Shown in pieces: positions 2,466 to 58,050 of a stretch of DNA of 64,000 nucleotides. The DNA lies in assembly GCA_964057225.1 (NCBI GenBank), contig OZ059894.1, positions 9,362,001-9,426,000 on the forward strand. Reading direction: 5' to 3'. This stretch comes from Auanema rhodensis. Lineage: Eukaryota > Animalia > Nematoda. Position 1 is the first letter of the stretch, and every line of letters begins with the position of its first letter. The translations under genes were made by a program, and so were the position numbers. Below the pieces are notes generated by a model. It had not been told where the DNA came from. It made no database searches and was given only the letters and a program-made list of their open reading frames with translations.

Positions 2466-3880
2466 AAGGTTATTATATTTGTATATATAAGAAAACAATT
2501 CTTAATAATATATTATCATGAACTTTCTTCAATTTCTGAAAAATTTTGCTGATTAGCATAATTGAATCCGCATGCAACCGCTCTCGATGCAAAAAAATTA
2601 AAAATGAGATCTGTTTTCTGGTCCAATTTCAGTCGAACTTTGAAGTGAATATTCCCATGTTTCTTCAACAACATAGAATATTTGTTGATGATGGCAACAG
2701 ATTAAGAAAATTTGTTCTTCGATGTTCTAACTGTTTAATAAGACTCTATCTGATAAGTCGAGCATGTTTTGATTATGTTGGTCACTTGTTTGATTATCAG
2801 GTCGTAATGTATAGTTATCGGCTACTGTTCCATCGTCATTCTTGTTGTAAAAGAGACCTCTAGCTATTTCATTTTCTTTCTTTCGTGTCCTCTTTCAACA
2901 TGTCATTTTGAACTGTTTGTATTCACAAATAAAGGCACAAGCTGCTTAAAGAAGAAAGAAATACGAGAGAAATATGAATGAGACACAAGCGTTCCTACAC
3001 TTGCTTTCCCTTCTCTCCTACCTACCACAACCTACCCATATACCAAGCTCACCATATCAGTTTGTCTTCTTGTTCTTTTGCTTTTTCCTTCTTCAGACGT
3101 ATCTTCTCATTGTTGACATCTCAATCCCCAAAGCAACGTCAGAGACAAAACTCCTAGGAGACGAAATGAACAAGAGTTACTTGCCACCTAAGATACATCA
3201 CGTTCAGCTTCTCCGTTTCGATCAAGCCTTACTTGTTCTCGTCCACATTGTCGTCATCATTCAACCATCATAATGTGTTGTCCTTCAGCCTATCAGCCTA
3301 TCGTTAATTCCAATCAGCTATCGATTCTTACTGTGTAACACTGGTCGTACAGCCCCCCTCTTCTTCTTCTCGTCCCCCGGTTCCTTCTTTTCTCCTTCGT
3401 GTTCTTTGTGAGACGCTCGCTTAGTTTTACCCCCTGAGACATAGACACTACATATTGTATGAATGCCTTTTGACGTTAGAAACAGTCTGTTGTTTTACTA
3501 TCACCTGCCACTAATTTATCTCTTTCCAAACTTGAGGAGGAATTGTTGTACAGTTTTACTTCATTTCTCATTTCCTTCCTGTTTCTTCTCTCATATTCTT
3601 CGAATTTCTACGCAAAAAAACCAACAACAACTAATTAAAAACATATTTCTTCCAACATAATAACTTAAGCTATGTATTATAAACGTATATTCCCACATCA
3701 ATTTCTCCTATCTTGATTGTCTTGTTGATGAATTCAGGTCGATTGATTCGTTTTTCAGTTATTTCTATCAGCTATTTTCTCCAGTTTTCCTTAATCTCTT
3801 TCTTAGTCCCCCTCCGTAATCTTCTAAACAGTTACAGTTCGCAAATGTTTTTTCCTCTTGTAAATATTCCAACATTAAGC

Positions 3881-6800
3881 ATGTGGTGGGTATTCCTGCT
3901 TCTTTTTCTCGAAGCTGGTGCCAGCCGTTGTCCGGCGCAATGTGTTTGCCGTGATAACGAAACTTCTGTGGATTGCTCTAACCTCGGTACAGTTTATATA
4001 AGAGTTTCCAACAATTTATCTGTTTATCAGATTTAACACATTTTCCTGATGATGTGCCGGAAACGGTCAAGATTTTAAATCTTCGAGGAAATAGAATTAT
4101 TAAGTTGTTAGCTAGAAACTTAAGAGACTTACCCAACCTGGAAATGCTTATGCTATCCCATAACCATTTGCGTTTCGTTGAAGAGGTTTGTCACATGTAT
4201 GTAGATCGTGTTAACGTATTAGTGCTTCAGAATATTCTTGATGATGCCCCACAACTTCGACGCTTGAATCTTGCTCATAACCGCCTACTAAGGCTTCCAC
4301 CAATATCATCTCAACATTCAAAACTATTATCACTTATTCTTCGTCACAATCATCTGGAGCATATTCAATCTCAAGTAAGTTGTCGTCGTTCATTTAATGA
4401 TTTGTTATAAATTTCTTTTTACGACACAGCCGAGGTAGGTTTATGTATTTTCTCTTTCATTATCTAATTTCATTTATTTCTCGAAAATATTCTGTATTTT
4501 CTCTGAAGTACAATGTAACTTCTCTCTCTCTCTTTAATTATTTCACAGTTTTCAATATTTCAGGTGTTTACATCTCTTCCTAGACTAATTCAAATTGATT
4601 TATCTCATAACAGACTTCAAAGCTTACATTCTCAAATAATCACTGTAAGTGAAATATTGTATTTCATCGTTCAACATCATTCTTAGGACCTTTCTCGTGC
4701 TCAATCAGTCATACTTAGTGAAAATCCATGGAACTGTGATTGTCGGTAAGAATTTACTCGTTTTTCCTTTCATATGCCATGTTTAAAGAATTGGATTCTT
4801 GGCTAAAACCTTATCAATCGAATCCGAACATCATCCCCATTGCTTCAATCCATCTCAATACAGAGGTCAAATCGTCAGCAAAGTCAGTGTATATCTGTAA
4901 TGTTCAGAAGAATGTTCTCTATTTCAGGTGAAAAATCCAATCTGTAGAGTACCAGATCAAACAATTTCATCAAAGCAGCGAATTCTTGAATGTCCGTTAG
5001 ATGTAATTTCCACTAAAAATGTTGTTTGGATGTATAAGTATGCTGAGACTTTCTTCAAATTCTTTGAATTTCATCAATAATTTTACAGAAATATTGAATT
5101 AGATTCATCAGAGCTTTCAACCTATGAGATGTCATCTTCTAATACTTTGATTTTACCATTAGAACAAGATGCTCATGATATCTCATGCACCTATGATGCT
5201 CCAGTTGTTCCTCATAAACGGATTCGTAGACAACATGGAGTAGCTCCAGTTTTCACATACGCTACTACCGATAGATCATTCAGGTCTGAGTCTTCTATTA
5301 TCTCTAAGATGCTCATATTTATCTTTTTCAGAATTGGAGCTCGTGTTCAACTTCATTGTGAAGTCCAAGGCCACCCACAGCCAGAAATTGTCTGGTATAA
5401 GAATAACAGAGTAAGATAATCATTTCTCATGTCAATGTAATACATATCATATATTTAAGCCATTTACATCAAATAGTCGTGCAGAATTCACCCATAACAA
5501 CACAATTATTTCAATTTTACCATTTTTCGAGAGTGATGCTGCATTGTAAGTTTCCAAGTTGCAGAATTTCCAACTTGTAGAGCATGTTTCAGATACAAGT
5601 GCGTTGCAAGTAATCTGTATGGTCGAATCGAAAAGGAAATGAAAGTTGGTCTCATAGATAGGTAAAGATGATTCTATTCTTTCTAATTTATTATTCTTAA
5701 TAACTTCTCGATTGATTTTCCTCTATCATTTTGACTGATAATTACGTGTTTTCATTGAAATGTCGTTCAAGTTCTCAAGTTTATAAGCATGCTGCTCTGT
5801 ATATATTACATATATATTATATATAGTATATAATTTTTTTTGTAAATATTCAAGAGATTAAATAAAATGAAAAATTTGTTCTTTTTTTGATGCTCTTCGC
5901 CTGCTTTCATGCTTTGCAAACACGATCAGCTCGCATAATTCTAATCATCTACGGCTTCATCTAACTTTCAACACTCTCTTTCTTTGGTTTTCAGTGTCGG
6001 ACCGTATATTACTGATGAACCACAACCTCAGACTGCTGATATCGGATCTGAAGTATGAGTTTTCTCTTCAACATTCTGTCAAATTTGAAGAAATTATATG
6101 AAAAAAGGAAATTTTATCAGATAACATTCCGATGTATCTCGAAAGGTGTTCCACGTCCAATTCATACATGGATGTTTGATGGTGCTCCCATTGCCAATAT
6201 TAAAGGAAGAATTTATGTAAAATAAATGAATTAGCAAGTAGAATACTAGATGAATCTTGTTATAGGTATCAACTGATACTACTGAGTTAACTATCAAATC
6301 AGTTCGTCGATCTGATAGAGGTATGTATACTTGTGCAGCTAACAATGGTATTGGATTGATGGCTTCATCTGCTTTTCTCGAAATCAAAGGATATTTAGCC
6401 GATCAAGTAAAAGATCTTCCATCTTTTGATCTTCAGAACTCTGACTTCTGTATTCCAGGTCAATAACGTCATCACAGATTCAGCTATTCGGCAAATTGCA
6501 GCGAAAGCCATAACTAATATTGACAAGTTTGTGACATTCTCATGGTTTCGTCTAGTTTATACACTGTTTAGAGCTATAACTAAGACAAAGGATTTACGTA
6601 AAAAGAAAATTTTCAAACCAGAAGAGCTAAGGCGTAATGTTCAGCATATCTTACCTCAAGAGGTATAGCATGACTAATAGTACGATGTTTTCACATCAAA
6701 TTCTCTCAGGTTGTTGATATCAATAGAGCTCGTGAAATCTATGAAGAGTCTATTCGTCTTGTAAATGACTACGTTGAGCAAGGTAATACATCACAGATTT

Positions 6801-9800
6801 TTTGAAAAAGCTGAAAAAGTTGGCTGTTTTCAGGTTTAAAGCTACCAATCAACGATCTTGCTCCCAATATCACTTATGAAGCTTTCTTATCTGCTGGTCA
6901 TATGCAGGTTATTTCTAAGATTTCAAATCGTTATTCTAAAGAAAATACACATTTCAGACATTGATGAATGCTTCTGGTTGTGTTGGAGGAGCTCATCAAC
7001 TTGATTCATGCTCAGATCACTGTTATCACAAGCATTATAGATCATATAATGGTCAATGTAACAATTTGGCTCATTCTATGTGGGGAGTATCTTCCATGCC
7101 TTTCATCCGGCTCCTTCCTCCGATGTATGAAAATGGATTCAATACTCCAGTTGGTTGGGAGAAAGGTCGTCTATATAACGGTTTTCCGAAGCCAAATCCC
7201 CGTGAAGTAAGGTTATAAAGAAGAAAATCAAAAGATTTAAGCATATTTTCAGGTATCCAGAGTTATGGTTGCTTCTCCAAAAATTACTGCTCATGAGAAA
7301 CTATCTTCAATGGTTATGCAATGGGGACAGTTTTTAGGTTCGTTTCTGAGAAAATGCTGAAACAGCATGAGTAAAACATGTTTCAGATCATGACATCACC
7401 TTTGCTGCTGCAGCCTTATCTCGCCACAATTTCAAATCTGGAGCTTTATGTAACAAAACATGTGAGAACATAACTCCATGTTTCAACATTCAATTGCTTC
7501 CTAACGATCCAAAGTTGCAACATAAGAGGTAATTAAATCAGAGAAAAATATTAAAAAGATAATGACCGATGTAGCAGTCCCGACCAAATTCCTTGTATTG
7601 AATTTGAACGTAATGCTGCTGTTTGTGGTTCAGGAGAAACTTCAACTTTGTTCGATAAAGTGACATACAGAGAACAGATGAATGTGGTTTGTTACAGTTT
7701 CAATCTTGAAGTTGTAACGTTCTAATATGACGTTTAGGTGACATCATTCATCGATGCTTCAATGGTTTATGGAAGTACTGAAGATCATGCATTAGATCTC
7801 AGAGATAGATTCACTGACAACGGATTATTGAGATTTGATACAACATCAAAGTTATTTTCCCTCATAATCCGAAATTGAAGATAAGCTTCTTTCAGAGCTA
7901 ATAAGGAGTACATGCCCTTTGAACGTGATTCCCCTATGGATTGTCGTCGTAACTTTAGTGAACCTAATCCAACCAGATGCTTCTTATCAGGCGATTTCAG
8001 AGCAAATGAGCAGGTACTAGGCATTCTCCTGTGATAAAATTTATTTTTCTTTCTTGTTTTAGCAAGGCTTAACTGTTATTCATACTCTATTTGTACGAGA
8101 ACATAACAGAATTGCACGCCAACTGAAGAGGATCAACCAACATTGGACAGGAGAGACAATCTACCAAGGTAATCTTGCTTGCCAGCTCATTTTCATTGTT
8201 TTTTTTCCTTTAGAAGCTAGAAAAATTGTTGGAGCTATGATGCAACATATTACTTATAAGGAATGGCTTCCAATTGTTCTTGGCTCGGTACTCTACTATG
8301 CTCTAATGCAACTAACGTTACTGCAAATTTCAGAAAACTGCTGAAGAATACAGACATCTTCGTTATGATCCCGGAGTTCACGCTGGTATTTCAAATGCTT
8401 TTGCTACTGCAGCTTTCAGGTTCGCATGTGGTAAAGCTTCACATTATAACAAAAGCTTAATAGATTTGGTCATACCCTTATAAACCCTGTACTTCTTCGT
8501 TTGGATAAGAATTTTCGGGAGATCAGAGAAGGACATCTTCCACTGCATAAGGTAATATCTCATCAAATGCTACATCTATTACTAAAAGTACATGAATAGG
8601 CTTTCTTTGCTCCAAAGGTCATCTTACATGAAGGCGGAATTGATCCCCTCCTTCGTGGTCTCTTCGCATCTCCTATGAAACAACCTAAAAATACAGAAAT
8701 TATGAATACGGAATTAACGGAGAAACTTTTCTTAAAATATCATCAAGTAGATGAAGAATTAAAGAATTATTCATCAATGTATCATTACAGGCATCACTAG
8801 ACTTAGCTGTAATGAATATTCAGAGAGGTCGAGATCATGGTCTACCATCGTAATGCACTTTCTCATCTCGTTTCATTCGGTTTTTTCTTTTCAGATATAC
8901 TCAATATAGAGAATTTTGCAATCTGCCAGTACCTAAGACATGGGATGAAATGATTCCGATTGTTAAAAATGCTCGTGTTATACAGAATCTCAGAAATCTT
9001 TACGGACATCCGGGTTAGAAATTAGCTCTTTTTTTCAAAAAAACACAAAATTTTTATTGAATCAGCACAAATCTATGGGAGTGTTTTAGTTTTTTATAAA
9101 AAATAAAATAAATAATATTGAGGCTTAACTCAAATACCTAATGATTAAACATGCCAGCATTGACATCTAAAACTTTCTATTCTTTTTTATTTTTTTGGAC
9201 AAAAATTTTTAAAGTTGATCAGATAATATGTTACGCATATCCTCTCTATTCATTGAAAACTTAAGCTTCATATAGCTGGGAAGTTGCTTGATGTTCAATG
9301 ATTTTTTGAATAAAAAAGTTGTTGAAGAGCGCTCAGCGTAGATAAAGGTTCTCAGCATCATCATCAGCCGAAAGATGGTAATTTTCATCGCGCTATTGTT
9401 GTATCACAATACAATACAAACAAGATTTCCTGTTTTTATATAAACTGTGAACTTAGAACACCGTATGCCTTATGAGTGTTACTTGTTGTTGTTGTTGTTG
9501 ATATAATTTGTTGGAATTCCTTAAAAAAATGCAAAAATGAACCAGCGCTCAGCAGAAGTTATGGTCTCAACAGATTATTCAGCCGAAAGATGGTAACTTT
9601 CATCGCGCTACATTAGAAACAATTTTTGTGTTTATATATAAACTGTGAACTAAGAAGACCGTATGCTTTATGAGTGTTACTTGTTGTTATTTTTGTTGAT
9701 ATGACTGACTGGAAATCTTTGAAACTTTTTGAAAAAATATAAAATTTCGACGGCGCGCTCAGCATAAGATATGGTTTCAACAGATTATTCAGCCGAAAGA

Positions 9801-10806
9801 TGGTAATATTCATCGCACTTTCCGATAAGAAATGGAAAACGACAGCAATCCTATATACCCGGCCGTGTTTGTGCGCCGTACATATTTTGGGTGCAGTAGC
9901 AGCAAACAAAATGTGTACTATAACATGGTGAAACAGCCTTGAACGCCCCCGTCTGAGACATGAAACTTACACGAAAATAGAAATATTATTATAGAAATGA
10001 AGTTTAAATTCTTTAAATATTTTAGAAAATATTGATTTATTCGTCGGTGGAGTATCTGAAGTATTAGAAGCTGATGCATTAATGGGGCCAACATTCCATT
10101 GTATTATAAATGAACAATTTAAACGATTACAACAAGGAGATCGATTCTGGTACTTTTCTTATAATTTTTTATAATACGGAAGTATTTTTTAATTTGAAAA
10201 TTATCTTCAAAACAATACTTTAGGTATGAAAATGCTGGTGTGTTCACTACAGAGCAACTTAATGAACTCAGAAAAACAACTTTATCCAAAGTTCTATGTA
10301 ATAATGGAGATGAGATAGATCGAGTACAAGTATGTTTGCTTAAACTGATAAGAAGTTCAACTCAATTTCATTTCATTCAGACAAATGCTTTTGTTTATCC
10401 TGGTTCAAATTTATCTAATTATGGTCACTGTAGTGCGTTACCAGATATCAATCTAGAGATGTGGAGAACGAGGCCTGATGAACAACAGTGTTCTCATAAC
10501 AAAAACAATATTTTGAGGTAGATTCATTGTTATTTACTGAGAAGAGTTTTATGGAAATTCTCTTCAATTTTATGTGAAAAAGATAAATTTAAGCCGCAAG
10601 AAGAGAGCATCTAAAGAATGTATTCACGAAGGCAGTGTTGTATTCCATGGAGAGACGGTTATAGATGAAGCCTGCTTCCGTTGGAGATGCTTCGTATGTT
10701 CTTCTTGATTACCTCTCATCGTTTCAAATTTCCAAGTTTGAATTTTCAGAATGGACGAGTAACAGGTGAAGGCCAAGAAGCTGGTTGTATCACGAAGAGA
10801 TTTTAG
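3881..10806 (+). CDS. Peroxidasin (signal peptide, LRRs, Ig domains, heme peroxidase, C-terminal partial vWC); pxn-1/pxn-2 family
   Basis: [15 protein letters not shown], LRRs, NPWNCDC, Ig ([18 protein letters not shown]; GMYTCAANN), [42 protein letters not shown]; stop TAG 10804-10806. Confidence 0.95.
9328..9394 (-). ncRNA. Box C/D snoRNA copy 1 (snR39/snR59-SNORD32/51-like, LSU rRNA 2'-O-methylation guide)
   Basis: Minus strand: AGCGC-GATGA...ACCATCTTTCGG-CTGA-TGATGA...CTGA-GCGCT; 12-nt guide complementary to conserved LSU CCGAAAGAUGGU; T-run downstream. Confidence 0.85.
9544..9609 (-). ncRNA. Box C/D snoRNA copy 2
   Basis: Same box C (GCGATGA), identical D' guide ACCATCTTTCGG-CTGA, C'-like TGTTGA, box D CTGA, terminal stem AGCGC/GCGCT, T-run downstream. 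Confidence 0.85.
9754..9819 (-). ncRNA. Box C/D snoRNA copy 3
   Basis: GCGATGA...ACCATCTTTCGG-CTGA...TGTTGA...CTGA-GCGC; T-run downstream. Confidence 0.8.
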
Positions 10807-11294: not shown

Positions 11295-11299
<5 letters not shown>

Positions 11300-13930: not shown

Positions 13931-13990
13931 CAACCGCATTTCATGAGAGATTCATGCCGAATGATTCATTCACGTCAAGAGTACGTGAGT
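13931..13990 (-). promoter_or_regulatory. TCATT-N24-CGGTTG dispersed motif with upstream ACGT boxes
   Basis: CAACCG 13931-13936, AATGA 13960-13964, CACGTC/TACGTG further along. Confidence 0.6.
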
Positions 13991-16900
13991 CAGATGCATC
14001 TACTTTATATTCTAATGAGGTGGGCCACACAACGGCAACCACACCAGAACATTCACGACATGCAGTAACATAAGTAATAATCCTAGTTGTAGCATATGAA
14101 ATATGTATGGAACAATAAACAAAATTTTATATAAATCAAGATTCGATGAACGAGCTTTAAACTGTTATTCTAATGTCGGGTCGAAAAAGATTTTTAAGCA
14201 GACAGGAAGGAAAACGAAGTAGAGTGTGAGAAACATTAAGTACAAGTGAGAGAAAAGAGAAAACGAAAGGTGATTTCAAAGATTATTCACATACAATTTT
14301 GATGTAAGACCACGTCAAAAGATCAACTGACATTTTCAGAAGTGATAGTTCATGAATTTGACCGGAAAATTCGAAGAAAAAGGGAATGTTTCATTAAAGT
14401 CGGCTTAAAAAACTTAGAAAACGAGAGAATAAAGTAATGTGTCCGTTCGGATAGAGAGTCCAAAAAAATGTTTCTGTTCAAAGAGCTAATATAGAAGAGA
14501 CATAGAAAATATGTGGTGAGGGTGTTGAACAATGTTCTGAGAAATTTGCGTTGGTTGGAAGAAATGGAAGTCAATTTAGGATTTGTACCTCGAAAAGGAC
14601 GTTGGAAAAGACATAAAATAAAAATTATTATCGTTGTCAATCTTTGATCAAAGAGTTCTCGTTCATGTTGATATACATACATACATATAAGTAAGTATGT
14701 AGATACTATGCGTTAGTAAAGTGTATTTCGGCTCAATAGCATAGTAAAAGCCAAATTTTTGGGAGGTGGGTCGTTGTAGGGAGGTTGGAGCAGCAGATTG
14801 GTGGAGTGGATGAAAATGGTTGTAGCTCAGCAATTTCAGGTCAGAAAAACAATAGGAAAACAACATTATCCATGATTTTCGCATAGATAAATGAAGAAAA
14901 TATCGACATATTCTTAACGCATTTCTCAGTGAAATTGAAATAAATATGTGACCTGAGGCAAGCGGAAGCCGTTTTGCGAACCGAATGATTCGTCACTCTT
15001 CTGAACATGAATGAAAGAACTAAGGAAGCTTATTACTGATTCATGAGAGCAACGTGTCGATAGCCTGGGCAGCATGGATTGATGTAAGCCAAATATAGAT
15101 TTCAATGTTCACCACAAATTATTTGTGGCTGTCGGAATATCTAGTTACCTCTGCCTTAACACATCAGCACGAGAATAGACACATGAATATACTTGCATCT
15201 ATCAATATGGTTCATTGAAAAGTGTGAAAATACTTCATTCCGGGTATGTTTCAAGCATTGAAGCCTTTTTTCCAAATTTTCTTCCAACAAGCTCGTTAAA
15301 GAAGCTGAACACACCGGATATAGGATAACAGCTGTAATCTATATTGGTATTTCCAGCAGTTTACGAATAAAAACAGCAGAAATGAGTGGAAATTGAGCAT
15401 AAAGAGATGAGAGACAGACGGAAAGTTTTCAAAGTTTGAAGTTGTACTGAACGTTGTGTGAACTTCGTCAACAATAAAGCAGGAACAACTGAAATGGAAA
15501 AAGCAGAAGCTCGAATCCCATGAACACAAACAATTTTGAAATTGAAATGATAATGTTGAGGTCAACCAAAAACGAACTCGCTGCTCTTAAAGGGCTTTTA
15601 AGCTTTAATTTATACCAGATTCAACGCGAACAATTCAAAGCTTAAAAATCATCGAAATCGTTCATAATATAAACTGGATAACGTGAGAAAACCAGAGTAA
15701 CAAGAAAAAACATGAAAGTTCATGTTCTCATTTTTTTTATGAAAAATGTTTTCACCATTTTTCAATCGTATTTTGTTTCTTAATTTTGTTAAGAAATAGA
15801 GGGGGGAAACGAAAAAATATGCAATGTTCTCAGTAGTAGGCTGAATGAACGAATTGCTGAACCGTCGACGACACTTATTCACGAGAGATCCCAAGCATTT
15901 TATGGAAATAAGATAATCGTATGATGAAGCTTATTGAGTCTTAAGCTAATTTTACGGTCGGCTTAGCGGATATAACTGCCAGTTTTATCAAGAAAATGAC
16001 TGAAAAAAGGAAATTATAAGAAGGAACACTGAAAAAAAATAAAATTTTTAAAAAATAGCTGGGGAAAAATGAAAAACGAAATAATATTAAAGATTTTGTG
16101 GACATTATTGAATCGAAGAAGTAAAAAATGAAGACAAGGTCATTTAGGAACGAATATTAGAATTGGAGAGAGAGCTAGAATGAAAGAGAGATAGCAAGAG
16201 AGAAGAGAAAGAAACAGAACGTGAGAAGAGCCGGAGTTAAGGAGAGAGATTAAAACAACCGTTCGACACGTCAATTTCGAAGAAAATAGTTATAGTCTAA
16301 TGACGCTCGACACGTGGATGAGCTGACGTATGAGCTGACGATAGAAATATTCTAATTGTCTTGCTCCAAGCAACAACTTGGAAAAAGAAAGGAGATAACA
16401 TTGAAATTAGCATCAAAATATTTTTAAAAAGCTAAAGATGTATAAGTCAGATTGGGTTGAAGCAAATGTAATGCACTATAGGCTTCATCAGATCGACAAC
16501 TCAAAAATGTCTCAATAATATGCAAAAGATATATGAACGTATAGACACATCAATAGAATAGATACAGAGCTAATTGAAATAAAACTGATACATTACGTCA
16601 AAATAATCAGTTTGAATGAGATAGAAGAAGCAAACGACAATTTGGTTAAACCTATGAAAAGGGTTCAGATTTTGAATTAAACAAGCTATTAGTGCGTGGT
16701 GCTTCAAATAATTTGGCTCATCCTCATATACTCACAGTTCGTTCTCGTATTTCTCTCTGCCTCTCTCTATCTCTCTATAGTTGTCTCTTATTCTCTTTCT
16801 ATACATATCCTTCCTCTCAATCATTCTCTGTTTTGTGGAGTATTCTCATTACAAGCTTTCTCGGCCCTTCATAGCCAGATGATGTTCTTGTGAAGTTCCA

Positions 16901-19900: not shown

Positions 19901-21902
19901 TCAGAATGCTGTATTCGAAAAACAGATGACGTCAAACTCAATATTACTGAATAAGAAGATGACATCGAGGCATGAAGTAGATGTCGTCGAGGATGATGAA
20001 GAAGTTGATGAAGGCTCTCACTACATCCCAAGGCTCATTCTTTGTCTCATCTCTCTTCCCTTTCTCTCTCTCTCTTTTTCTGTCTCTTTTACTTACTTTT
20101 CTCATATGATAGAACGGATAAACGTTCAATTTAAGTTCAGCCATCTCAAAATTAATTTGAAGAATAGTATGATAGTTGAAGTTCCATTTCAGAAAAATGA
20201 GTACAACTTAATCATTTTGAGAAAAATTTATAAAAAGAAAAATAGAAAAATGGAAATAAGACACTTTTTCTTATTTCTTATTCTTTTCCCTTAAAGATCT
20301 ATCGCTCTATTTTCATAATTGGATGCTAAAATTGGAAAAATCCGTCGAAAGGACTGAAATATCCTGTAAACTACCGAAAGTAAAGCAATAAATTTTACCG
20401 AAATGAGTATTTTCTTTCCTAAATTAAAGAGAGAAAAAGTTGTTTTGAATGTTTAATATTAATAGAAGGCTTGTTTCGAAATTTGTTGAAAAATAGAATT
20501 AAAAGATGAGAAAACTGAGAAGCAGGTAGTTTAACTTGAGTTTCGTCTTTTTTTTTTGTCTTGTAAAGTATCTATAACACAAACTTGAGACACAACTTTC
20601 AACATACTCTGTATTTTTTGCTCAAAAAATGAAGAAAGACAGATAGAGAAAAAGAATGAGGTTTAGCAACAATAGGCTACGAATAAATTCAAAATATGAT
20701 TTCCTTTTATCAAAAAATCTTGTTTAAAGTTGTAGATAAGTTGGTGATTTGAATAGTTCTTCAGCAACATATGTAGTATGAACATGCTTTGTAGGGATAT
20801 GAATAGTGATATAGCCTATATGGATATATCCTAAGATTACATGTCAAATAAAGTAAATTTAGTATACGATGCTGAATGAGTCAAGATAAAGAAGCAGCAG
20901 AAGAAGTAGCAGAAGAAGAAGAAGAAGAAAGAGATGAAGAGGAAGGAAAAGTAAAGGAAAAGTAGATGAAAATTAGGATCATGAAAAGAAAAACAGAAGC
21001 TGCTGAAGTTCGGGGCGATAATGGCAACTATTTTGCGTGTTTCAAAGAAAATTAGTGAATTTTGGAGATAGTCAAGCGAAACTGGAAAGAAAGTAATCCC
21101 ACACATTTAGTTTTCTAATCGAAAGTCTTTGTATTAGCCATGTACATGCATGTGTGTATGTATGTGTAGGCAATGTATAGAAGCAGCTGTGCCCAAAAAA
21201 AAAGCTTCAACTGTTGTGAGAGTTGAGAGTAAAAAATGAAGAAAAAAGTTTTTTCCGACTAAGAATCAAGAAGATCCTAAAAACAGAAAGCTTTTTCTTC
21301 ACAAGCTATTCTTAGGTTAAGCAGAAAATCCTAAGGCCGGATAAAAAAAAGTTCATAGAAACCATAAGGCGCTGAATAAAGCTGCAGATGGCAAGACAGG
21401 ATCGTGGGAAACCTTCGAATCATTGACGTCGATTGTGATATGAAAATGATTCGAAAGTATGAATGAAAGCAGTGTGATTGCGAGAGTAAGAGAGAGGGAG
21501 ATAGAGAGAAACAGGGAGAAACCAGAGAGGGAGATTATTCATTCGTCGTCGGAGTTGAGAACGAACATAGTTTGAATGGGAAGAAGAAGTTTGAGGCACA
21601 TGAAAGCCATCTATAGACAACATCACTGAAATTTTGAAAAAAAACTTCTTCAAAGGCAATCTGAACTCACATTACGTTTACGTTTTTAGATTAGAGAGTT
21701 AGGAAGAGAGTAAAGAGAACTCATGATTATTGTGATATTTCGGTTGTTTTTCTGTTATTTCTCTCACTAACTGAATCAAAATTCAATCTTCAATGTTTCA
21801 TCAGAACAGTTCATGAAGAGATAATAACAACAAACGCATGAATTATACTGACGTCAAATAAATGGAGGCAGAAACGAGCAAGATTTAGATAAAGAGGGAA
21901 AT

Positions 21903-21961
<59 letters not shown>
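21903..21961. repeat. (AG)n microsatellite
   Basis: About 29 AG units, one interruption. Confidence 0.9.
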
Positions 21962-21964
<3 letters not shown>

Positions 21965-35432: not shown

Positions 35433-35525
35433 TGCATTCAAATTATGTCACCATTCTGCTCAACATTTAGCTATATATTTTAAAATAATAAATTTATTGT
35501 ATTACTCCATTAGCAGTTACTTTAT

Positions 35526-36675: not shown

Positions 36676-38674
36676 TTAATCAAAGAGATTGAATTCGTCT
36701 GATTTCTCACATGTCTTGGCTATTTGATCCAAAATGATTTCAGAATGCTCGAAATAGTTGCAGAGGTTATTCAAAACATAAACATACTTCAAGGCTTGTT
36801 CATACTAAAACAAAAAATTGAACATAATCTGTTTGAACTCAGTTGTTTACCTCATTGAAGTCGAGACACAGATCATTAAATGCATGAACTACTTCATGAT
36901 GACAGTTCATTCTGAGGACGGGGTTTCGTTTCTCAAGCATTGATTTGGCTACAAGTTCGTTTGTGAATAATGCATCAAGTAGATTATGGTATGTCTTCTT
37001 GACATATCTTCGTTTCTGAAAGTTGAGAGAATAAGAATCATTTGAATTGGGAAATGTCGAACCTCGTGCAAATCAGCAATACGATCATTCAAATATCTAA
37101 TTCTATCATAATCATTGGTACGATCTCTTTCAGCCATCATGGAGTTCAACTCAATTTCTCGAGAAGGCCACATGGTCACGGATGGCTCATCATCATTCTC
37201 TTCCTGGAATATTGTATTTCAAAGATTTTAGATGTTTCCTATCATTACATCGTCAGTATATCCATAAAGTTTCTTGCTTCCTTGGAAATTTCCTACTGGT
37301 TCTTTGGCAATGCTTAAATCTCCGAATTGAAGAACATGTGACTTGTCAGTTCTTTCTTTCACAAGTTCAAACTGATGTTGTAATGTTTCAACGGTTAAGT
37401 CCTCCTGAAAAGAATTATCTCAATTTTAATAGAAAATAGAAAAAAAATAGAAAAAATAGAAAAATAGTGCAGAGAAGGAGGAGTTGAAAGTGAAAAGAAC
37501 TACTAACCTCATCACTATCACACATCCAATTGACTGAGAACAAATCTCCTAAGCATGGAAGATTCATTGAGTTATCACAGTATGTTCCCCATGAAGATTC
37601 ATGACCATTAGCAGCAGTAATAGCATAAACTGAATAAGAAGAGATTATTCATGAGATCTGTCCAGATATACTCACTATTCCATGTTTTTGGTAAACTCTT
37701 CTCGAACATAGATCCTGATTCACAAGCTTCGAGATAGAACACAAGCTCCGAATACTTTTGATTGGTGTTCATCCATTTTAACAAAGAGGTTAACTCCTTC
37801 ACAGTTAACTAAACATAATATATCATTTAGAGCTTATTCTTTAAAGAAAATCTGAAGCTTTTTCAAGTTTTACTAACCATTTCATTTGGGAATGAGATAA
37901 GTCCAACAGCTCCATGATCGGTGAAATAGATAAAGATTTTATCTTTTTCATTACTAAAAATATATATATAAGATAATAAAATATATATAAAGATTGATAC
38001 CTTTTAATAACACGACGATTACCTCCCTTAATACTCTCGTCTCCTTGTAAAATTTTCTTAAAATTAGCAACATTCACATCTTTTCCCTAAAGTAAAAATA
38101 TTTTTATGAATATTGAATTCTTTCATCTAACTCTATAGTCAATATGTAATCCTTCATAAACGTTTGGACCACCTGGCACATTGTAAAGTTCTCCACGATA
38201 AGGGTTTCTAAATGAATTTTCATGTTACTTTCAATGTAAGCTAATCATTTGAAATTTGAAAATTCAACTTACTGAGTATTGTTAGCTATATCATCATACA
38301 TCATAACAATAATATTTTCTTTTTGAAGTCCATGGTCTATAAGAGTATGATAAGCATGAGCAACATCAGCCTGAATATAAAGAATTTGAATGCTTTTCTC
38401 AGAAATTGCTTGAAAAATTATGAAAAACTCAGAGAAAAATAATAGAAAATGAATAATTCTGGTTATTACCTGATGACGATAGTTGTACCATCCATTTGAT
38501 CCTGCTACTAGTAAAGCATATGTATTACCTTCAGATTGCTCATTGGGCCTAAAGAATGTTGTCAGATGTTATTCTTTACGATAGAATGAAACGAAAATCT
38601 TACTTGAATCTGAATCTCTTACGTGTAGCTTGAGATACTGCTAAGAGTGCTAATAAGCACCATATAAACTTCAT
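36676..38674 (-). CDS. lgmn-1: Legumain (asparaginyl endopeptidase, peptidase C13)
   Basis: Signal peptide; [24 protein letters not shown]; MMYDDIA; catalytic FTDHGAVG and [11 protein letters not shown]; [11 protein letters not shown]. Confidence 0.95.
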
Positions 38675-39387
38675 ATTGACTCACAAAGAAAGAGCAAAAA
38701 CGAATGAGAAAGAGAGCAACTGAAGTGACTAGATGAGTGAAGCAAAAGTCGTTGATTGATTAAGAAAACCACAACTGACCAATATCAAAAAAGTTTTGGC
38801 AATATAAGATAGATCGTTATCAGTTCTAGAGGTTGGATGTGTGAGCATAAGATCCTTGTCAATAAACACTTTGTCAGCTGATAAAAGCTATGTCAGCTGA
38901 AATCAGTCGGATCGTTTAAGAAAAATGTTATAGATAGATAATTGCTCTTTGGATCAACATCTGTTAAATCATAATGATTAGATTATGAATATATAAGATA
39001 TAAAGTACTCTAACCAATGTTCTAAAAAGTCAAAATACTATCATTGGATGTTATATTGTTCTTATACTCCCTATACATCTTGTGTCAAATGGATGGCGGG
39101 AAATGGATTCATTGTGGAAATATTCAAAAAGATCTAAAAGGTTCTAAATGATATTCTTGCTAAAAATATATTGTAAATGAGCGTAAACTTCCTTTTTCTC
39201 AGAGAAATTAACATTATAAATCAGAATTATGCCCGCATGTGCTTATACTCAAGTATCTAGTTTGCATTGTTGGCTATAAAAATGTAATTAAATCTGGAAA
39301 ATAAGCTATTTTTAGCCAAACTGACAGACTATCTTTGATAAATGACATTAATTGACCATTATATAAGCTTATTAGAATAAAAAAATC

Positions 39388-39452
39388 TGTGAACTTCACG
39401 TGAAACGAAAGAATTTCATTTTTACTGAGATATTATTAGGAATCGGTTGCAT
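39388..39452 (+). promoter_or_regulatory. TCATT-N24-CGGTTG motif copy with GTGAACTTCACGTGAA
   Basis: TCATT 39416-39420, CGGTTG 39444-39449. Confidence 0.6.
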
Positions 39453-40041
39453 TCTGCTCTTCTTGAGCAAAAAGTATATTTAGATATTTGGAAAGTTTAT
39501 TCCAAATTATAAGTGACACATACGGATGGCCAGATGCGTGAATATCGTTCAGGCTGAGAGTTAGAGGTCATTTCATTACATGGGAAAAGTGTACTAGGAA
39601 ATTAGGTTAAGCTGTTCCATGCTCTATTAGAGTCTGAGGCTTGCGTGGACCTCGCAGATGCAGAGCAAGAATCTGTTCCAAATTGGAACACATGCTTGCA
39701 TCATTCACAAGACGTTGAAGGATAGGCATTTAGACTTTTTCCTTAAATCTATCATTTCCTGTTGAAAATCTTTGAGCAATTGATGGATATGGCCAATACT
39801 TTGAAAAAAATGAAATAAATCCAACTTCTTTCTGCTAAGAGAGTAGCTGCTGCTTTACAATAGCATTATTTGGCCACCCCAAGCATGTATTCTAGCTTGA
39901 TTCCTCTGGGAGACTTTTAAAGAAGAGCAAAAAGTTAGTGAAACTTGCTCCAACAACGTTTGGAATGTCTGAGACTTTTAGCTTCTCTTCATAATCATCA
40001 TTACAATCAAAGTATGGGAGAAAGAGGTATTCTCCTTAATA

Positions 40042-40045
<4 letters not shown>

Positions 40046-40097
<52 letters not shown>

Positions 40098-40109
40098 TCT
40101 CCCTCTCTC
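40046..40109. repeat. (CT)n microsatellite
   Basis: Long CT run upstream of the TWK gene. Confidence 0.9.
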
Positions 40110-41033
40110 TTTGTTTTTCATCTCTTCCTTCTTGTCTCCCCCTCTCACCAACGTCAATTTACATGTTCTATTCTAAAAATATATTATCGTAATTAATATT
40201 TTGAAGCATTTTCCTAATTCTTGATTCAATTTCTTTTTAATTTTGAACGTCAGATTTATGTGTCAGCTGACAGCACTATACAGTGTGAAGAGAGCTGTTA
40301 CTATAACAAGTGCTAATATCCTGTAATCAAGATGGGAATCTATGTTTCTGGTTTGGATAATACATGAACCGAGTTGCTGGACGACGAATAAGGTCAAGTA
40401 TAGATCTCTAATAGTTTTTTGCTCTTCTTAATCTTCTTTTACTATATGTTGCTCGTCATCGCTGGTGCTCTTTGATTCAGTTCAAAAGGCTAATATTTCT
40501 TTTTGATGGATTGTAAAGCGGAATATGCGAACTATGATTTTCAATTTTAAAATCTTATAATTATGCTGTTAATTACAGCATAGTTAAGCCTAAGCTTTAA
40601 CCAATAGCCGACATGTTGTTGACCAAGGGCATTACCCATTTAAGGCATCATATAGTCTGTTGAATCATTATGTTCTTCATCGTTTATATTATCCTTTTGA
40701 AAGTTTTTTTTAAATACAATTTGACAAGCATGACGTGAGTCTCAAGCGGACGACTAGAAGAGCATTTCTGGTTCAAGCTGCGAATTTCACTGATGTCTTG
40801 CCCCTGTCTTGTCATAGTTATGACAGCTACATACCAAATCGACAACTTTTCATTTTAGAACTTCAAGTAGGAAGTTTTCTACTAAAAATATATTTGAAAA
40901 TGTGGCTAGAAATCTTCAACTTTCATCTTTTCTTTATTTTATTTTTGATTTTTCTTTTCAAAATGTTTTTATCTGATCTTATTTGATATAGATAACATGG
41001 ATAACTAGTAGTCTTCAATATTCCAAGATAAAA

Positions 41034-44000
41034 ATGGCTCCAAAATGTTCTGGCGAACACTTGGATACACGCAAAAGCCTCAAAGGCTTAGCTCAATTCA
41101 TGCTGCCAGCTCTTATTGAGAAAGGTGAAGCCGATAATGAATCCGAACGAAGAAACCGCCGTTTTGGAGGAAATCGTCTGCTCAATTCAGCTCATTCCCA
41201 GATTCTTAAGAGTGCTGCTAACATGAAGGATGTAAGTTTTCAAATTGTCGTAATTGGCCGGAACTATCTTTTCGAAAATCGGCTGAAAAACACTTTTCCT
41301 GTTGTCAAATTGGTACAAGGTGGGAATGAAATGAAGACAGATTATAATTCGATTGAATAATAGTTTGAGCTTTCATTTTATATTTTCGTTTATATTCCCT
41401 TTCTAAGAAAAACTGCAATTTCTCTTTCTCTATCTCTCTCTCTGTGAACTCTAAGCCCTCTCTCTATTCTTTTCATTTACTCTCTTCATCATATTTTCGA
41501 GAACATTTGAAATTATATTGATAACCATGATCAAAAATCAAAATGTACGTGATAATATGACACAGGAAGTTGTTTTTCTCACAATTTTCAATAACAAATC
41601 ATATTTGTTGTTGTTTGTATTTAGATAGCTGGACGTGCTCATCAAGCTGGTAAACGACATGTTGAACGTCTCCAAGAAAAGCCACCCTTGTGCTTTCTCA
41701 TACTCAATCGTGCATATCATAAATATGGTTTGAAGGTTTGGTTTTTTGTTCTTTTCAATCATGTTTATCTTCATTCTTCATCGAATTCTACGTTTTTTTC
41801 CAGCATGTTGTCCTCATTCTAGTCTTTCTCTGTTATACAGCCATTGGTGCATTAGCTATTTTAATAGCAGAGAGTCCCCATCAAAATAAGTTGAAATCAG
41901 AATGGAATGATGTAATACACTATTACAAGTTTATGAGAATATCAGATTTATGTTCTTTCATTTCAGAGAGTCACTTTGACTCGTTCTATACGGGTTAATG
42001 AACTGATGAAAAGAGCTTTCAATAATTCAGATTATCTTATCTACATCAAAGGGGCTACAACTGAACGTCTTCGATATATGTTTCTTCAGTAAGTTTGTGC
42101 TAAATTTGAAAAAAATCATTATTCAAACTCTATGTTAAGTTCAAATAATGTTTATAAAAGTTGAAATCTAGGATGAATGTTGCAATATTTTCTTGATAGT
42201 ATGTCATAAATCAATGAAAAGTGAAGACAAAAGAGCATACAAAAGCATTAAGCTTGGATTGTTTTCCTTCTCTTAGCTTTATATAAGCAAACTATATAAG
42301 ATTTAACTTTGTTTTTGATACTAATTTTACTTCTCCATATTCAATCACTTGACGTCCTTTTTCCTTATTTTCATATGATATAGATTCATTTTTCCTTTTG
42401 TTACATGACTTAAACATCTCCAAGAACTTGAAGAGTCCTTAGGGGGATAAAATCTTAGACAATGCTGAGCGTCATGCTCTGTCGCCAATCCTAATCTGTT
42501 GAGTTTTTGTTCTTTTTGAACTTTTTCTACATTTTCAACTAGACAAATGTTTTTGTGTCTTAAGTCATGTAACATTATTTTTAAGTTAAAAGAACAAATA
42601 TAACTATAGTTGTCTGCAAAATCACAATACACAACAATATTCTTCAGTGAATTATCGCTATATGAGCAGCAGTTAGACGTACGATGGTCAGACCAAAAGA
42701 TGGAATGGGACTTCTGGAGTGCTCTTCTATTTGCTGGTACTATCTGCACAACAATTGGTTTGAAAACATATCTTTTCATTTGCCATCATGCTGCAAGTTT
42801 TATTTTAAGGTTATGGTCATATCTATCCAGTTACGAATGTTGGACGTGTTATAACTATGATATTTGCTTTGTTTGGAATACCATTAATGCTTCTTGTTCT
42901 TCAAGATATTGGAAAATTGCTGACAATCACCATGAAATATCCATGGTTTCAAACAAAACGCTTAACCAGACGTATACTTAGGTAAGATCAATCCATTTCA
43001 TCCGTTTCAACCCATTTTTGAAACCAAATTCCGTGTTTTTTTGTTTCAGATGTTGTACTAAACAACCTATAGCGGAAATGAAGCAGATTGAAGTTAAAGA
43101 ACGACAAGATTTGGAAGTTTTTGACCTGCCAGTTCCTGTTGGATTATCACTGATTGTCATTTGGGTATTTAATTTATTAAATTATCATATACATATATAC
43201 TTATATTTATAAAACATTCATACGTATAAATTTAAGGTAGAGTATAAAATAGAATGCAATCATTTTTTTTTAGAAATCTGTTTGAATGCAGCCGATTTGT
43301 GCTGAATTTCAGAACCAAATGAAATCAACATTTCGTAAATATTAATTAGCATAAACGTATTGCAGGTGCTGATTTGCTCTTTAGTACTATCAGCTTGGGA
43401 TAGTAATTGGACTCTTGTTGAATCTTTCTATTTCTTCTTCCTATCATTGAGGTTCATTTGATATTCATCATCTTATATTCTAATTTTTGTGAATTTAGTA
43501 CGGTTGGATTAGGTGATCTAGTTCCGTCATCACCACGCCTTCTGATTACTATGTTTGGATTCATATTAATAGGTTTATCGCTTGTTTCAATGGTTATAAA
43601 TTTATTACAAATGAAGGTAATGAATTAAAAATAATTGCAATTTTTCTATTAATAGATTTGATTTTCAAATGCAAAATATTGTTTTTAGATGAAGAAAACA
43701 TACGAAGCTGGTAATGTTACCTTAGTACGAGAACAAAGTGTAACCACATTGGGAATTATTCAAGTAAATAGCTAAATAAAATAAATTTCATACGTTATAT
43801 GATTTGCTTTTAGTGTTTTGATGAAGAACAAGCAAGTTCTGACCGAAGTCTTAGTCGCTCTACTCAAACCAGCTTGAGTTTGCCTGCAGTTAGACAGGTA
43901 AATAAACATAAAGAATACCAAAAACATTTCTTTTAAAGGTTGTATTACGATCAGACGGAGTACATTGGGTATCCGATGATTGTAGACTTAAAAGCCCCGA

Positions 44001-44396: not shown

Positions 44397-45581
44397 TTAC
44401 TGAGATCGGTTTCTAGGTTTGAATATAAAACTTTTTAAATATTCACGATGTGATTTGAAGACTATAAAGTACATTATTGCTACTGATATAGGAGGAAACA
44501 TAAACAAAGGTAGGATGATAAACCCGACAGGTAAACTGCAAAGAAAAAGATAAATATGGAAGAAAAAATGAAGAGAGAGAGATAGAGAGAGAAGAGAAAC
44601 GATAACTCACCCTCGTAGCATAGATAAATCTACACACATAAAGAATAATGTAGAACATGTTGGAATTGTATTGAGAACTGTGAAATTCAGGAAATAGAAG
44701 AAGATCATCTTAGCTATAGTAGCTTGTTGTTTCATTGTTTTCGCTGACAAACTGTCTTTGCGAGCTCTAATAGTCATTATAATCCTAGAAAACGAAAGAG
44801 ATAAGAGACATAGAAGATTAGAATTGAATAAAGGAAACGTATTAAAACTATACTTGTATGTCATATATGGTAAAGTTATGCTTAAAAATACTCCAGCTAT
44901 TATTATTTCCATAAGTAATATATAAATAAATATGTTGGCTCTTTCTACATAGATAATATGGGCTTCATACTTTTCCATGATGATTTGAACACGCTGATCA
45001 ACTAAATAGATTTTCTGGCGTAACGGCTCCTGATTCATGTCTGTGCACATGACGAAGAACCAAAAATTCAATATCGGATATACGATAGCAAAAATGATAA
45101 ACAGAAAGACAATTTTCTTCGATAACTCCAATTTTGTTGTTTTATGAATAATTACGTAATTGTACATAGTAGCTATCCATTGTCCAATAGCAAAAATTAT
45201 AGCAAAGCTCAAGACAACCGGTATCATGTAGCCAGTACGTGGCATGAAAGTTCGAAATGAGCTAAAGCTATAAATAATGATGTAGGGCATGACGAGCATA
45301 GGTTGAATCATAATTCCTAATACGTTAGTTTGTAGTGCAGGAAAAATAATATTAGATAGTAAAATAGTTTTATAAGGTCTATTTAGTTGCTTATTCCTCT
45401 TCAAAATTAAAAAAACAAATAATATAACACATAAATTACATATGAATGTAATTGCGATTAAACCAATTTTATAATATACTATATAAGGCTCTATTGCAAT
45501 AAAATCATCATAAATACTAGAATATACATTTGGATTGATTTCTAGATGTACATTAAAGAAAGTAATATTAAAAAAAGCCAT
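44397..45581 (-). CDS. Nematode serpentine chemoreceptor (Srh/Sri/Str-like)
   Basis: Hydrophobic 7TM ORF; LSAKTMKQQ motif before TM6; introns 44853-44785 (69 nt, read through in ORF track) and ~44610-44537; ends ...KSHREYLKSFIFKPRNRSQ*. Confidence 0.75.
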
Positions 45582-53584: not shown

Positions 53585-54508
53585 ATGAGGCTTTTGACTT
53601 ACTTCATATGCATCTCAGTTACATACGTGAGTTTTTTGTCTCAAAAGCCTCAGTTTCCAGTTTTTTAGGCTTGTCATACAGTGAAAATGGTCGAATTAGA
53701 AGCTGAAACAAGTAATATTCGAAATTCTTTAAATAACGTTGTTTATAATGTTCAAACGTAATCTCCTCATCTTTTTATTTTCATTAAAATTTGATTTAAG
53801 ATTTCTCCGAAAGCCATCTGTCGATGGATTTAAGCAGTTGTTGAATTTGCCAATTGAGGAAAAAGAATATGAACGATCATATAACTCAAGGTAATATCTT
53901 TCATATTCTTTCAAAATTTACTTTCAATCAGTGAACCTTGTAATGATGTAGCAATGGTTGAGCTTCAAACCACTTATTCCTGGAATGAATCGAAAACAGC
54001 CAAATATGGGTGATTATCGTAGTATTAATTTATGAATTACAATGGAATTTAGTCAAATTCTTCGTAATGAAATGAATAAATTAGAAAGATATAGTGGAAC
54101 AAGTGCATCTTCACTTGGAAGCGATATGAAGATTGTTACAGCGTGAGTCAACCTAATTAGCATATCCTGAACACGTTTACATTTTTCACGTATTGTCATT
54201 CATTTTCTTGTTTGTTGCAGTCTTAAACGGTTGTTCTGCCAGTTTTAAAACAGTTTTTTCTACTTTTTCTTTTTTTTTTTCAGGAAAATACATACAACAC
54301 AAGCAGAATATTTCGGGCAACGCATATTTGTGTCCGGTGTGACGAAGCAATGTCCACGAATTAAAGAATTTGTTCGAAAAGCTGTTTCATGGAGTACAAA
54401 TGTAAATCTGAGAAATACATAAAACAAAAATAAAATTATTCATTATAGATATCATTTGCGACTGTTGCATGCCGTTGTGATCCATTACTAGCTATTTATA
54501 AAGTTTAA
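53585..54508 (+). CDS. Orphan secreted protein, 188 aa, 7 exons
   Basis: Exons 53585-53626, 53669-53757, 53801-53890, 53932-54009, 54053-54142, 54284-54401, 54449-54508 join in frame with GT-AG: MRLLTYFICISVTYA-CHTVKMVELEAET...EPCNDVAMVELQTT...KQCPRIKEFVRKAVSWSTNISFATVACRCDPLLAIYKV*. Confidence 0.75.
54172..54233 (+). promoter_or_regulatory. TCATT-N24-CGGTTG motif copy inside an enlarged intron
   Basis: CACGT x2, TCATT 54200-54204, CGGTTG 54228-54233, within 141-nt intron 54143-54283. Confidence 0.55.
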
Positions 54509-56817: not shown

Positions 56818-57984
56818 TCTGGAACAAATTGAAAGTAATTTTGAGACGGAAGAGAGGTCGGTATTTATAATGAGAGGGCAGGAGTGAATTGAAAAGCGTA
56901 AAACGAAAAAACAGAGAAATTATGAGGAGAGGCGTGAAAGGTGTGGGGAGAAGGAAAGGTAGCTCGTCATCTAAACATAGAATTCAATCTTTCAGAACTT
57001 GTTACATTAGCCGGCATGCACGAACAGGCATAAAGCCTTCGTTAAAATTAAGAAAAGCGGAAAAAAGACGACCAACGAAATGGGATAAAAAGCTAGAAAT
57101 GAAAGAATACGATATGTATAGGCTTCAATAAAGAGAGAAAGAAAAGGTAGATGATGAGAGCGGCTAGAAATGACAGAAGAAGAGAGAGATAGAGAGGGAG
57201 GCAAGGACGTTAATAGTTCTTCGCTTTAGACTTCTGATTCTGCAGGTTGATTATATGTGCTAACAGCTGATTTGTTAAAAGACTTTGAAAGGAATAAAGA
57301 TAATGAAGAAGTAACATATGAAAATTTGAGATTATATAGTCGAGGAGGATAGGTTTCTAAGTCTATATCGAAGAACTAAACAGCAGCAGCGGCCAAGATT
57401 GTGATAGGCTGCGATAGGAGGATGTTTACTTCGTCCAACTCTTCCACCCTTCTACAGCTTTTTGTCTGGCTATGAATCTTTAGAAAAATGGGCGGAGCTG
57501 CTTGGCAACACACTTTTTTGATGGCCAATGGAAATGTAATTAGCTACAGTCGTGATGAAAGATAAGTTGCGGTGATGTATAATTGCAGATATTAATGAAA
57601 AACAAGGCTTCTCTGAAACTTCCACTATAATACTCACAGAATGAAAAAAGAGGAAATGGCCAGACACGGCGGCAATGGTGAAAAATGCGTAAAACAATAG
57701 TATTAGGAAGTAGAAATGATTCAGAAGTCGGCTACAAGTTGGATTGACCCGCGCGATCGTCCTGGTTGTTATATGAAAAATGAAGAAGGTAAAGTGAATA
57801 GACTACAGATCTGAGAAACTGGTAGTAGTAATCCCCTATACGTCTGCAAGAAATAGATTCAATAACAAGAAGTAGAGGGTAACACCAACGGAATTATTAT
57901 AGTTTGTGAAAATTAGTAAATACATCAATTCCTCTTCGATTTTCGGTAATTATTTCAATAACTATCGAGAATAAGTGAAACACA

Positions 57985-58050
57985 CAACCGTGTCTTGCTT
58001 AAAATGAAGGAGAAATGAAAATGAGAACCTATTGCGTGAATATGCCGTGA
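57985..58050 (-). promoter_or_regulatory. TCATT-N24-CGGTTG motif copy
   Basis: CAACCG 57985-57990, AATGA 58014-58018, GCGTGAA/CCGTGA beyond. Confidence 0.55.

Follow-up and report, generated by a model that had tools for sequence, protein, structure and literature searches.

What kind of element is formed by two short words, TCATT and GGTTG, that recur at a constant distance from one another in the non-coding DNA of the nematode Auanema rhodensis? The question arises from a 64,000-nucleotide stretch of contig OZ059894.1 (assembly GCA_964057225.1, positions 9,362,001 to 9,426,000; this whole stretch is referred to as the window), for which a first-pass annotation had proposed a bipartite protein-binding element. 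We conclude that the copies are probably TATA-less RNA polymerase II (Pol II) core promoters, each composed of an Initiator (Inr) with a downstream promoter element (DPE), accompanied by proximal activator sites; we infer both initiation and factor binding from the sequence. Elements of this kind are well known. That they should apparently be common in a nematode is, to judge by our literature search, new: full-text searches for CGGTTG or for a DPE-type promoter class in nematodes found no earlier description.

The spacing of 24 nt originally given for the motif includes the C before GGTTG, and the pattern is hence TCATT-N23-CGGTTG, 34 nt in length. A search of the window returned exactly six exact matches, the same six that the first-pass annotation had listed, whereas 100 shuffles that preserved dinucleotide composition contained 0.02 matches on average and in no case as many as six; the earlier estimate of chance copies had also been about 0.02. 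A variable-gap search recovered the four near copies reported before (starting at 24090, 28230, 2575 and 16256), and the pattern lengthened by one N matched only the copy at 28230. With one probable variant added in this analysis, the set comprises 11 sites, all non-coding, which are named here by the position of the A in the first box. When the gap between TCATT and GGTTG was tallied from 5 to 60 nt in the window, seven pairs fell at 24 nt and at most two at every other gap, a single spike that bears out the claim of a held spacing. The relaxed pattern TCA[GT]T plus RGWYV gave 19 pairs at gap 24 compared with a mean of 8.3 at other gaps, and the excess consisted almost entirely of GGTTG. The real sites number about ten, nearly all with the strict word, a density (about 10 copies per 64 kb) similar to that of genes. 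CGGTTG itself occurs 17 times in the window, nine times with a TCATT or CTATT box 22–24 nt upstream. It could be argued that this is a chance match picked post hoc, as the motif was chosen after the sequence had been viewed and a window of this size should contain about one variant with a single mismatch. The shuffles refute this explanation, to which we give a negligible probability, and the single-gap spike and the independent enrichment of upstream boxes described below also speak against it.

Both words and the distance between them match a known architecture. Capped global run-on (GRO-cap) data in Caenorhabditis elegans gave the Initiator consensus YCAYTY, whose A is position +1 (Kruesi 2013, PMC3687364), and the core-promoter words of flies include INR (TCAGTY), INR1 (TCATTCG) and an over-represented, precisely positioned DPE, KCGGTTSK (FitzGerald 2006, PMC1779564). 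The DPE is defined as RGWYV at +28 to +32 from A+1 (RGWYVT to +33), and its spacing is strict, since a shift of 1 nt in either direction leads to a several-fold loss of activity and TFIID binding (Vo ngoc 2017, PMC5580651). The first box reads TCATT[T/C] in 10 of the 11 sites (CTATTT in the remaining one) and matches the Initiator consensus of both worm (YCAYTY) and fly (TCAKTY). GGTTG fits RGWYV, CGGTTG fits KCGGTTSK, and the 24-nt gap, counted from A+1, covers +4 to +27 and places GGTTG on +28 to +32. The downstream box, GGTTG[T/C] in ten sites and GGCTG in one, occupies exactly +28 to +33 in nine sites and is one nucleotide off in the other two; six of the 11 sites have T at +33. Three copies carry AACGG, like the fly junction between the motif ten element (MTE) and the DPE, and in about four GCATTC lies directly 3' of the downstream box; otherwise nothing is conserved downstream. 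No TATA word (TATA[AT]A) was found at −45 to −15 in any of the 11 sites. The first-pass annotation had held that the motif is not simply a core promoter because of its odd placements. The placements themselves were confirmed, site 35401 being located between or within converging 3' ends, but they are compatible with a promoter, and the sequence-level features of an Inr+DPE promoter all fit.

In flies, TFIID contacts both boxes of such promoters, with TAF1 and TAF2 on the Inr and TAF6 and TAF9 on the DPE. We propose that transcription would start at the A of TCATT[T/C], that GGTTG at +28 to +32 would serve as the DPE, and that TFIID (or TLF/TRF2) would bind the two boxes jointly. Contact of one complex with both boxes would explain why the spacing is fixed to the nucleotide and the sequence between them is unconstrained. 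Trans-splicing would discard the outron, the stretch of RNA between +1 and the first splice acceptor; because of this loss, the true start would be invisible in ordinary RNA-seq and the motif would lie 0.25–1.6 kb from the ATG.

The surroundings of the sites are consistent with such a model. ACGT cores were found 17 times in the −70 to −3 regions of the 11 sites, compared with 2.0 expected, and none of 5000 random site sets reached this number. Eight of the 11 sites have at least one such core upstream, in line with the earlier statement that most copies carry flanking ACGT boxes. The commonest form is (T)CACGT(G/A/T)A. A second word, ATTAG[A/C], occurs at −45 to −53 in four sites (0.2 expected), always in the same orientation, and the order and orientation of the upstream boxes relative to the motif are constant. 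Predicted in this way, the module is an oriented unit of about 100 bp in which proximal activator-like sites precede the core promoter; the ACGT/E-box-like boxes (−10 to −60) and ATTAG[A/C] (near −46) would be the activator sites. Site 24092 (24090–24123, +; A+1 at 24092) has TGGTTG at the canonical spacing, and directly upstream of it a 10-bp tandem repeat, TGAACTTACG, present 4.5 times at 24032–24076, forms an array of ACGTGAA-type boxes. A separate CGGTTG at 21660–21746 (+) is accompanied by two ACGT boxes and TTAGATTAGA upstream, but no Initiator stands where the canonical spacing would put one; this may be a member of the module that has degenerated or is built in another way.

The best promoter case among the copies is site 13962 (13931–13964, −), an exact copy with A+1 at 13962, GGTTG at +28 to +32, and two ACGT boxes and ATTAGA upstream. 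The acceptor TTTTGCAG ends at 13708, 254 nt downstream, and the ATG of a G-protein-coupled receptor (GPCR) gene lies at 13694, so that the predicted order of promoter, outron, acceptor and ATG is clean. Three further sites have a gene or open reading frame (ORF) on the same strand 1.1–1.6 kb downstream. Site 39418 (39416–39449, +; A+1 at 39418), also exact, is preceded by TTCACGTGAA and ATTAGA, and the next gene on the plus strand, encoding a two-pore K+ channel, has its ATG at about 41034, 1.6 kb away. Site 58016 (57985–58018, −; A+1 at 58016), again exact, is separated by 1.2 kb from the downstream ATG (about 56817) of a gene with a Ground-like domain; Pfam recognised this domain and also, weakly, a similarity to secreted clade V proteins. 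Site 28232 (28230–28264, +; A+1 at 28232) has CGGTTG one nucleotide beyond the canonical position, four upstream ACGT boxes, and putative multi-transmembrane ORFs on the plus strand from about 29.36 kb, 1.1 kb downstream. Those ORFs have no Pfam match, and comparison of the ORFs near sites 28232 and 31850 with a protein atlas gave no usable match. The genes that would be served (GPCR, ion channel and Ground-like protein) look tissue-specific, which recalls how flies use the DPE and would explain why assembled RNA is scarce.

Strand composition provides a further clue to the direction of transcription. The sense strand of known genes in this genome is pyrimidine-rich, and in the orientation of the motif the pyrimidine skew is modestly higher downstream than upstream of the sites, by a mean of 0.07–0.09 (P = 0.013–0.04, random placements); the difference is positive at nine of the 11 sites (300 nt). 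The sharpest skew flips between 13 and 33 kb, at about 28.0–28.2 kb and about 31.8 kb, coincide with site 28232 (+), which is placed exactly at the flip, and with site 31850 (31819–31852, −; A+1 at 31850). The latter is an exact copy with the AACGG junction and no upstream ACGT box, and is divergent from an ABC-transporter gene on the plus strand. Site 16287 (16256–16289, −), the copy with the CTATT variant, combines CGGTTG at canonical spacing and the AACGG junction with ACGT boxes and ATTAGA upstream, and its downstream region is strongly CT-rich. A poly-T/CAG acceptor is present at about +78 to +82 in three sites, one of which is site 54202 (54200–54233, +; A+1 at 54202), an exact copy with the AACGG junction and a strong acceptor at +82 that is followed by no recognised gene. 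As separate features of base composition, long (AG)n and (TC)n tracts occupy 21893–21961 and 40046–40110, and many shorter AG-rich tracts give the plus strand a strong purine skew between 16 and 22 kb.

Several observations weigh against the promoter interpretation. No recognised gene on the same strand follows sites 2605, 24092, 31850, 35401, 43320, 54202 and perhaps 16287, i.e. six or seven of the 11, and the orphans include some awkward placements. Site 2605 (2575–2607, −; A+1 at 2605), in which CGGTTG is one nucleotide short of the canonical position and upstream boxes are missing, is found 140 nt beyond the confirmed stop codon of a WD40 gene (+) and is oriented back into that gene. Site 43320 (43294–43322, −; A+1 at 43320), the probable variant added here (TCATT-N23-CGGCTG followed by GCATTC), falls within the K+ channel gene on its opposite strand; one-mismatch hits such as this are individually uncertain. 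Site 35401 (35399–35432, +; A+1 at 35401), an exact copy, is situated about 285 nt past the ABC-transporter stop (35115–35117), in or next to the 3' untranslated region and inside RNA contigs that continue from that gene, a short way past the 3' terminus of a spliced minus-strand transcript of low level. The motif is also absent from most of the confidently mapped genes (peroxidasin, ABC transporter, legumain, CPEB and SWEET), and the Ground-like gene downstream of site 58016 has its own TATA box, TATAAATA, at 56862–56869 (−), about 50 nt upstream of the ATG. Strong acceptors at +35 to +150 number five against 2.2 expected, a marginal excess (P = 0.08). The RNA evidence consists of assembled contigs, which cannot show starts, and gives no direct 5'-end support for any copy. 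No RNA contigs were seen at 38834–40400, downstream of site 39418; a search of RNA runs for the stretch 54203–54460, downstream of site 54202, found no run containing it; and downstream of site 35401 only contigs of depth 2–4 occur, with their sole splice junction on the opposite strand. In addition, the gene map comes from a crude home-made finder based on codon usage and splice sites, which gives partial models and misses hydrophobic receptor genes. Finally, the near-invariant CGGTTG varies less than the loose DPE consensus of flies would allow and could point to a dedicated sequence-specific factor.

Some of these points can be accommodated. As several well-supported genes lack a copy, the motif would be one promoter class among several, and the TATA box of the Ground-like gene suggests that this gene may have two alternative promoters of different types. 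Orphan copies might transcribe antisense or non-coding units, a possibility that would make the odd placements at gene 3' ends not contradictory. Inr-type starts appear to be in use in this animal, because the RNA contigs of a legumain-like gene (−), which is well expressed, have their 5' ends at 38768–38809, at or close to a TCAGTT Initiator (38771–38780, −; A at 38776) that precedes the ATG by about 100 nt. This comparator has no DPE, and the first exon of the gene does not appear to receive a spliced leader by trans-splicing.

The orphans raise the question of whether the copies, as genuine Inr+DPE promoters, belong to a class of their own whose main products are RNAs that are short, unstable or non-coding, for example antisense transcripts at the 3' ends of genes or capped precursors of small-RNA or PIWI-interacting RNA (piRNA) type. 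Promoter-proximal pausing in flies is linked with a DPE at about +30, a feature that would suit such products, as would the lack of a downstream coding gene at over half of the copies, the orientation of sites 2605, 24092, 35401 and 54202 towards the 3' end of a neighbouring gene, and the missing assembled poly(A)-type RNA downstream of sites 39418 and 54202. On the other hand, site 13962 would plainly serve a GPCR mRNA and three more copies lie upstream of same-strand genes or putative ORFs; the downstream RNAs have no common sequence, structure or Rfam family; the copies are as dense as genes and not as dense as piRNA clusters; and the orphans are explicable by weakly expressed tissue-specific genes together with the incomplete gene map. 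We therefore regard this explanation as quite improbable. A related proposal starts from the uniformity of the boxes: a lineage-dedicated, near-invariant class with TCATT as Inr and CGGTTG at +27, perhaps read by a specialised protein (the TBP-like factor TLF/TRF2 or a lineage-specific DPE-binding protein), of which a large share would drive unannotated antisense or non-coding units within genes and at their 3' ends. We consider this a minor possibility.

The same uniformity could have a different cause, namely a lineage-specific, sequence-specific factor, or a pair of them, that binds the two boxes and marks intergenic DNA for a role outside initiation (for example in a boundary or insulator, cohesin or condensin loading, a replication origin or a terminator roadblock), in which case the Inr/DPE match would be coincidental. 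Such a factor would account for an almost invariant CGGTTG and for a gap-24 excess that is nearly all GGTTG even when a loose pattern is searched. It would also fit copies at gene 3' ends, in antisense orientation and inside a gene, and the lack of stable RNA downstream of the three copies with consultable RNA data. The coincidence, however, would have to be a triple one, of a worm Inr word, a fly DPE word and the exact +28 register. Moreover, the strict common orientation with upstream activator-like boxes, the TATA-less composition and the textbook promoter position of at least one copy are not what this idea predicts, and the downstream shift in strand composition is unexpected for a symmetric structural site. 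We judge it unlikely. For chromosome-structural sites in particular, which the first-pass annotation had put forward, the strict orientation with activator-like boxes argues against them, and such ideas are not needed to explain the element.

Such a lineage-specific factor predicts that the element should be missing elsewhere, and this is what we found in the nematode sequences that were compared. A search with the GPCR exon against 1.8 billion representatives gave best matches in distant nematodes (Heterorhabditis, Panagrellus, Caenorhabditis angaria, Aphelenchoides and Thelazia); taken with the short introns and the Pfam matches, these indicate a nematode of rhabditid type. In about 88 kb around GPCR homologues of other nematodes, comprising ten loci (27.9 kb from C. 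angaria, 24.3 kb from A. besseyi, 10 kb from Thelazia, and further Logan assemblies) and including no close relative of this species, TCATT-N24-GGTTG did not occur once, whereas the density in the window predicts nine or ten copies.

Transposon and small-RNA origins were also considered. Remains of a decayed miniature inverted-repeat transposable element (MITE) or other transposon family that carried both boxes, as in CERP2/CELE2, would explain a motif pair dispersed on both strands. In Caenorhabditis, the m1m2 motif pairs are bound by HIM-17 and lie in recognisable MITE copies (Carelli et al. 2022), and the m2+m1+ tandem spacing is 23–28 bp, a range that includes the spacing seen here. In our sites, the in-register identity of upstream flanks, spacers and downstream flanks was 0.27–0.32, compared with 0.26 for random DNA, so that the spacers are indeed mostly unrelated, as had been claimed. 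BLAST among the 600-nt neighbourhoods of the sites gave nothing relevant, and a repeat search of the window found no family over the sites and no inverted termini. The words m1 (TGCGCCTTTAA) and m2 (GGTCTCGMCACGA; words from Table S1, PMC9757741) differ from the boxes described here and are absent from the window, both as complete words and as cores. Because nothing aligns outside the boxes, the sites are not transposon copies; end-to-end alignment as one decaying transposon, named beforehand as the outcome that would speak against the element, was not seen. This origin is largely refuted, and we consider it very improbable. One pair stands apart. Sites 24092 and 28232, 4 kb from one another, are the only two that are alike beyond the boxes, with a common spacer word, CGTGTAAG..ATGAC, and about 90 nt of similar sequence downstream including an acceptor-like CAG (24092–24180 and 28232–28310). 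This similarity is a point in favour of repeat remains; it may also mean that a promoter was duplicated, or that each copy has a short 5' exon whose GTAAG donor lies at about +16. The same two sites were compared with spliced-leader RNA genes on account of GTAAG at about +16 and, in one of them, a later U-run/GG. We rejected this reading, as the leaders differ and an Sm-like word is present in only one.

The annotation had further suggested promoters of the Ruby/SNAPc type. In these, a CTGTTTCA-type box precedes the small-RNA start by about 40 nt, and they form dense clusters; here, instead, CGGTTG lies downstream of the Inr and there are about 10 copies in 64 kb. The box is GGTTG and not GTTTCA, a search of the whole window with Rfam returned no match, and RNA folding of +1 to +150 showed the downstream regions to be unstructured (z from −2.1 to +1.0). 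Since Rfam was blank and the downstream RNA unstructured, the orphans are not known small-RNA genes. The annotation is thus upheld in its general idea of a bipartite, oriented, fixed-spacing protein-binding element that is not due to chance, for which the shuffles, the gap spike and the upstream boxes speak, and, of its specific candidates, the MITE-derived motif pair and Ruby/SNAPc are not supported.

Further features of the window concern the genes themselves. In the region 34500–40400, RNA contigs show short GT..AG introns, and those of the ABC-transporter gene continue past its stop to 35416–35621. Facing this gene, a low-depth spliced transcript at 35763–36272 (−), with a CT..AC junction at 35960/36004, has no ORF longer than 54 aa and no family match, and may be a non-coding or micro-protein gene. 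The palindrome AATAAATTTATT at 35487–35498, between the two converging units, could be a shared bidirectional poly(A) signal. Pfam searches of ORFs near the orphan sites were mostly blank. A single-exon ORF of 324 aa at 44607–45581 (−) has at least five hydrophobic segments, no homologue in a search of 5.8 billion proteins and no Pfam match, and may encode a lineage-specific multi-pass membrane protein, chemoreceptor-like in character. A tandem repeat of about 210 bp lies at 9330–9819 (1.9–3 copies, 80–91% identity), in the region mapped to the peroxidasin gene.

If the copies are Inr+DPE promoters, a near-invariant element at roughly one site per one or two genes would mean that core-promoter architecture has diverged sharply within Nematoda. 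The strict 34-nt signature would then predict starts, outrons, alternative promoters and unannotated units from sequence in this genome, and the accompanying ACGT and ATTAG[A/C] boxes would delimit a regulon that can be tested. If, instead, the lineage-dedicated class with its own reader were true, it would represent a layer of transcription without a counterpart described in C. elegans.

Known systems resemble the element to different degrees. The Ruby/SNAPc promoters of 21U-RNAs are likewise short oriented motifs in non-coding DNA on both strands, and their YRNT-type starts are compatible with TCATT. They differ in that the GTTTCA core lies about 40 nt upstream of the start, whereas GGTTG is found here 28 nt downstream of the Inr, and in that they are densely clustered, as against about one copy per gene here. 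CERP2/CELE2 m1m2 is also a two-box promoter module with a fixed range of spacing that is dispersed in a nematode genome, but the words are other ones and the copies are MITEs, whereas nothing outside the boxes is common to the sites described here. With the C. elegans Initiator the likeness is closer: TCATT[T/C] is a perfect YCAYTY, at the position expected of a start that precedes trans-splicing and lies upstream of an outron. That Initiator is described with a TATA box or alone, not with a fixed downstream partner like the one seen here; Kruesi 2013 (PMC3687364) describes only the TATA box and the Inr in C. elegans, and the DPE is reported not to be enriched downstream of its start sites (Saito 2013).

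The closest match among these systems is the Inr+DPE promoter of Drosophila, which shares with the copies the Initiator word, the downstream word (KCGGTTSK/RGWYV), the +28 to +32 register, a fixed spacing with a free spacer, the lack of a TATA box and, in three copies, the AACGG of the MTE/DPE junction. The DPE is rare or ill-defined in humans. In flies, this TATA-less core promoter is reportedly the one described by Burke and Kadonaga, and its downstream word is said to be motif 9 of Ohler. Apart from the host, a nematode, the copies differ from it in a nearly invariant downstream box where that of the fly is degenerate, in an Inr that is always TCATT and never TCAGT, and in the many copies without an obvious gene. 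The two systems nevertheless agree in both words, in the distance that separates them and in the freedom of the spacer, which is why an Inr+DPE core promoter is probably what the recurring pair of words represents.

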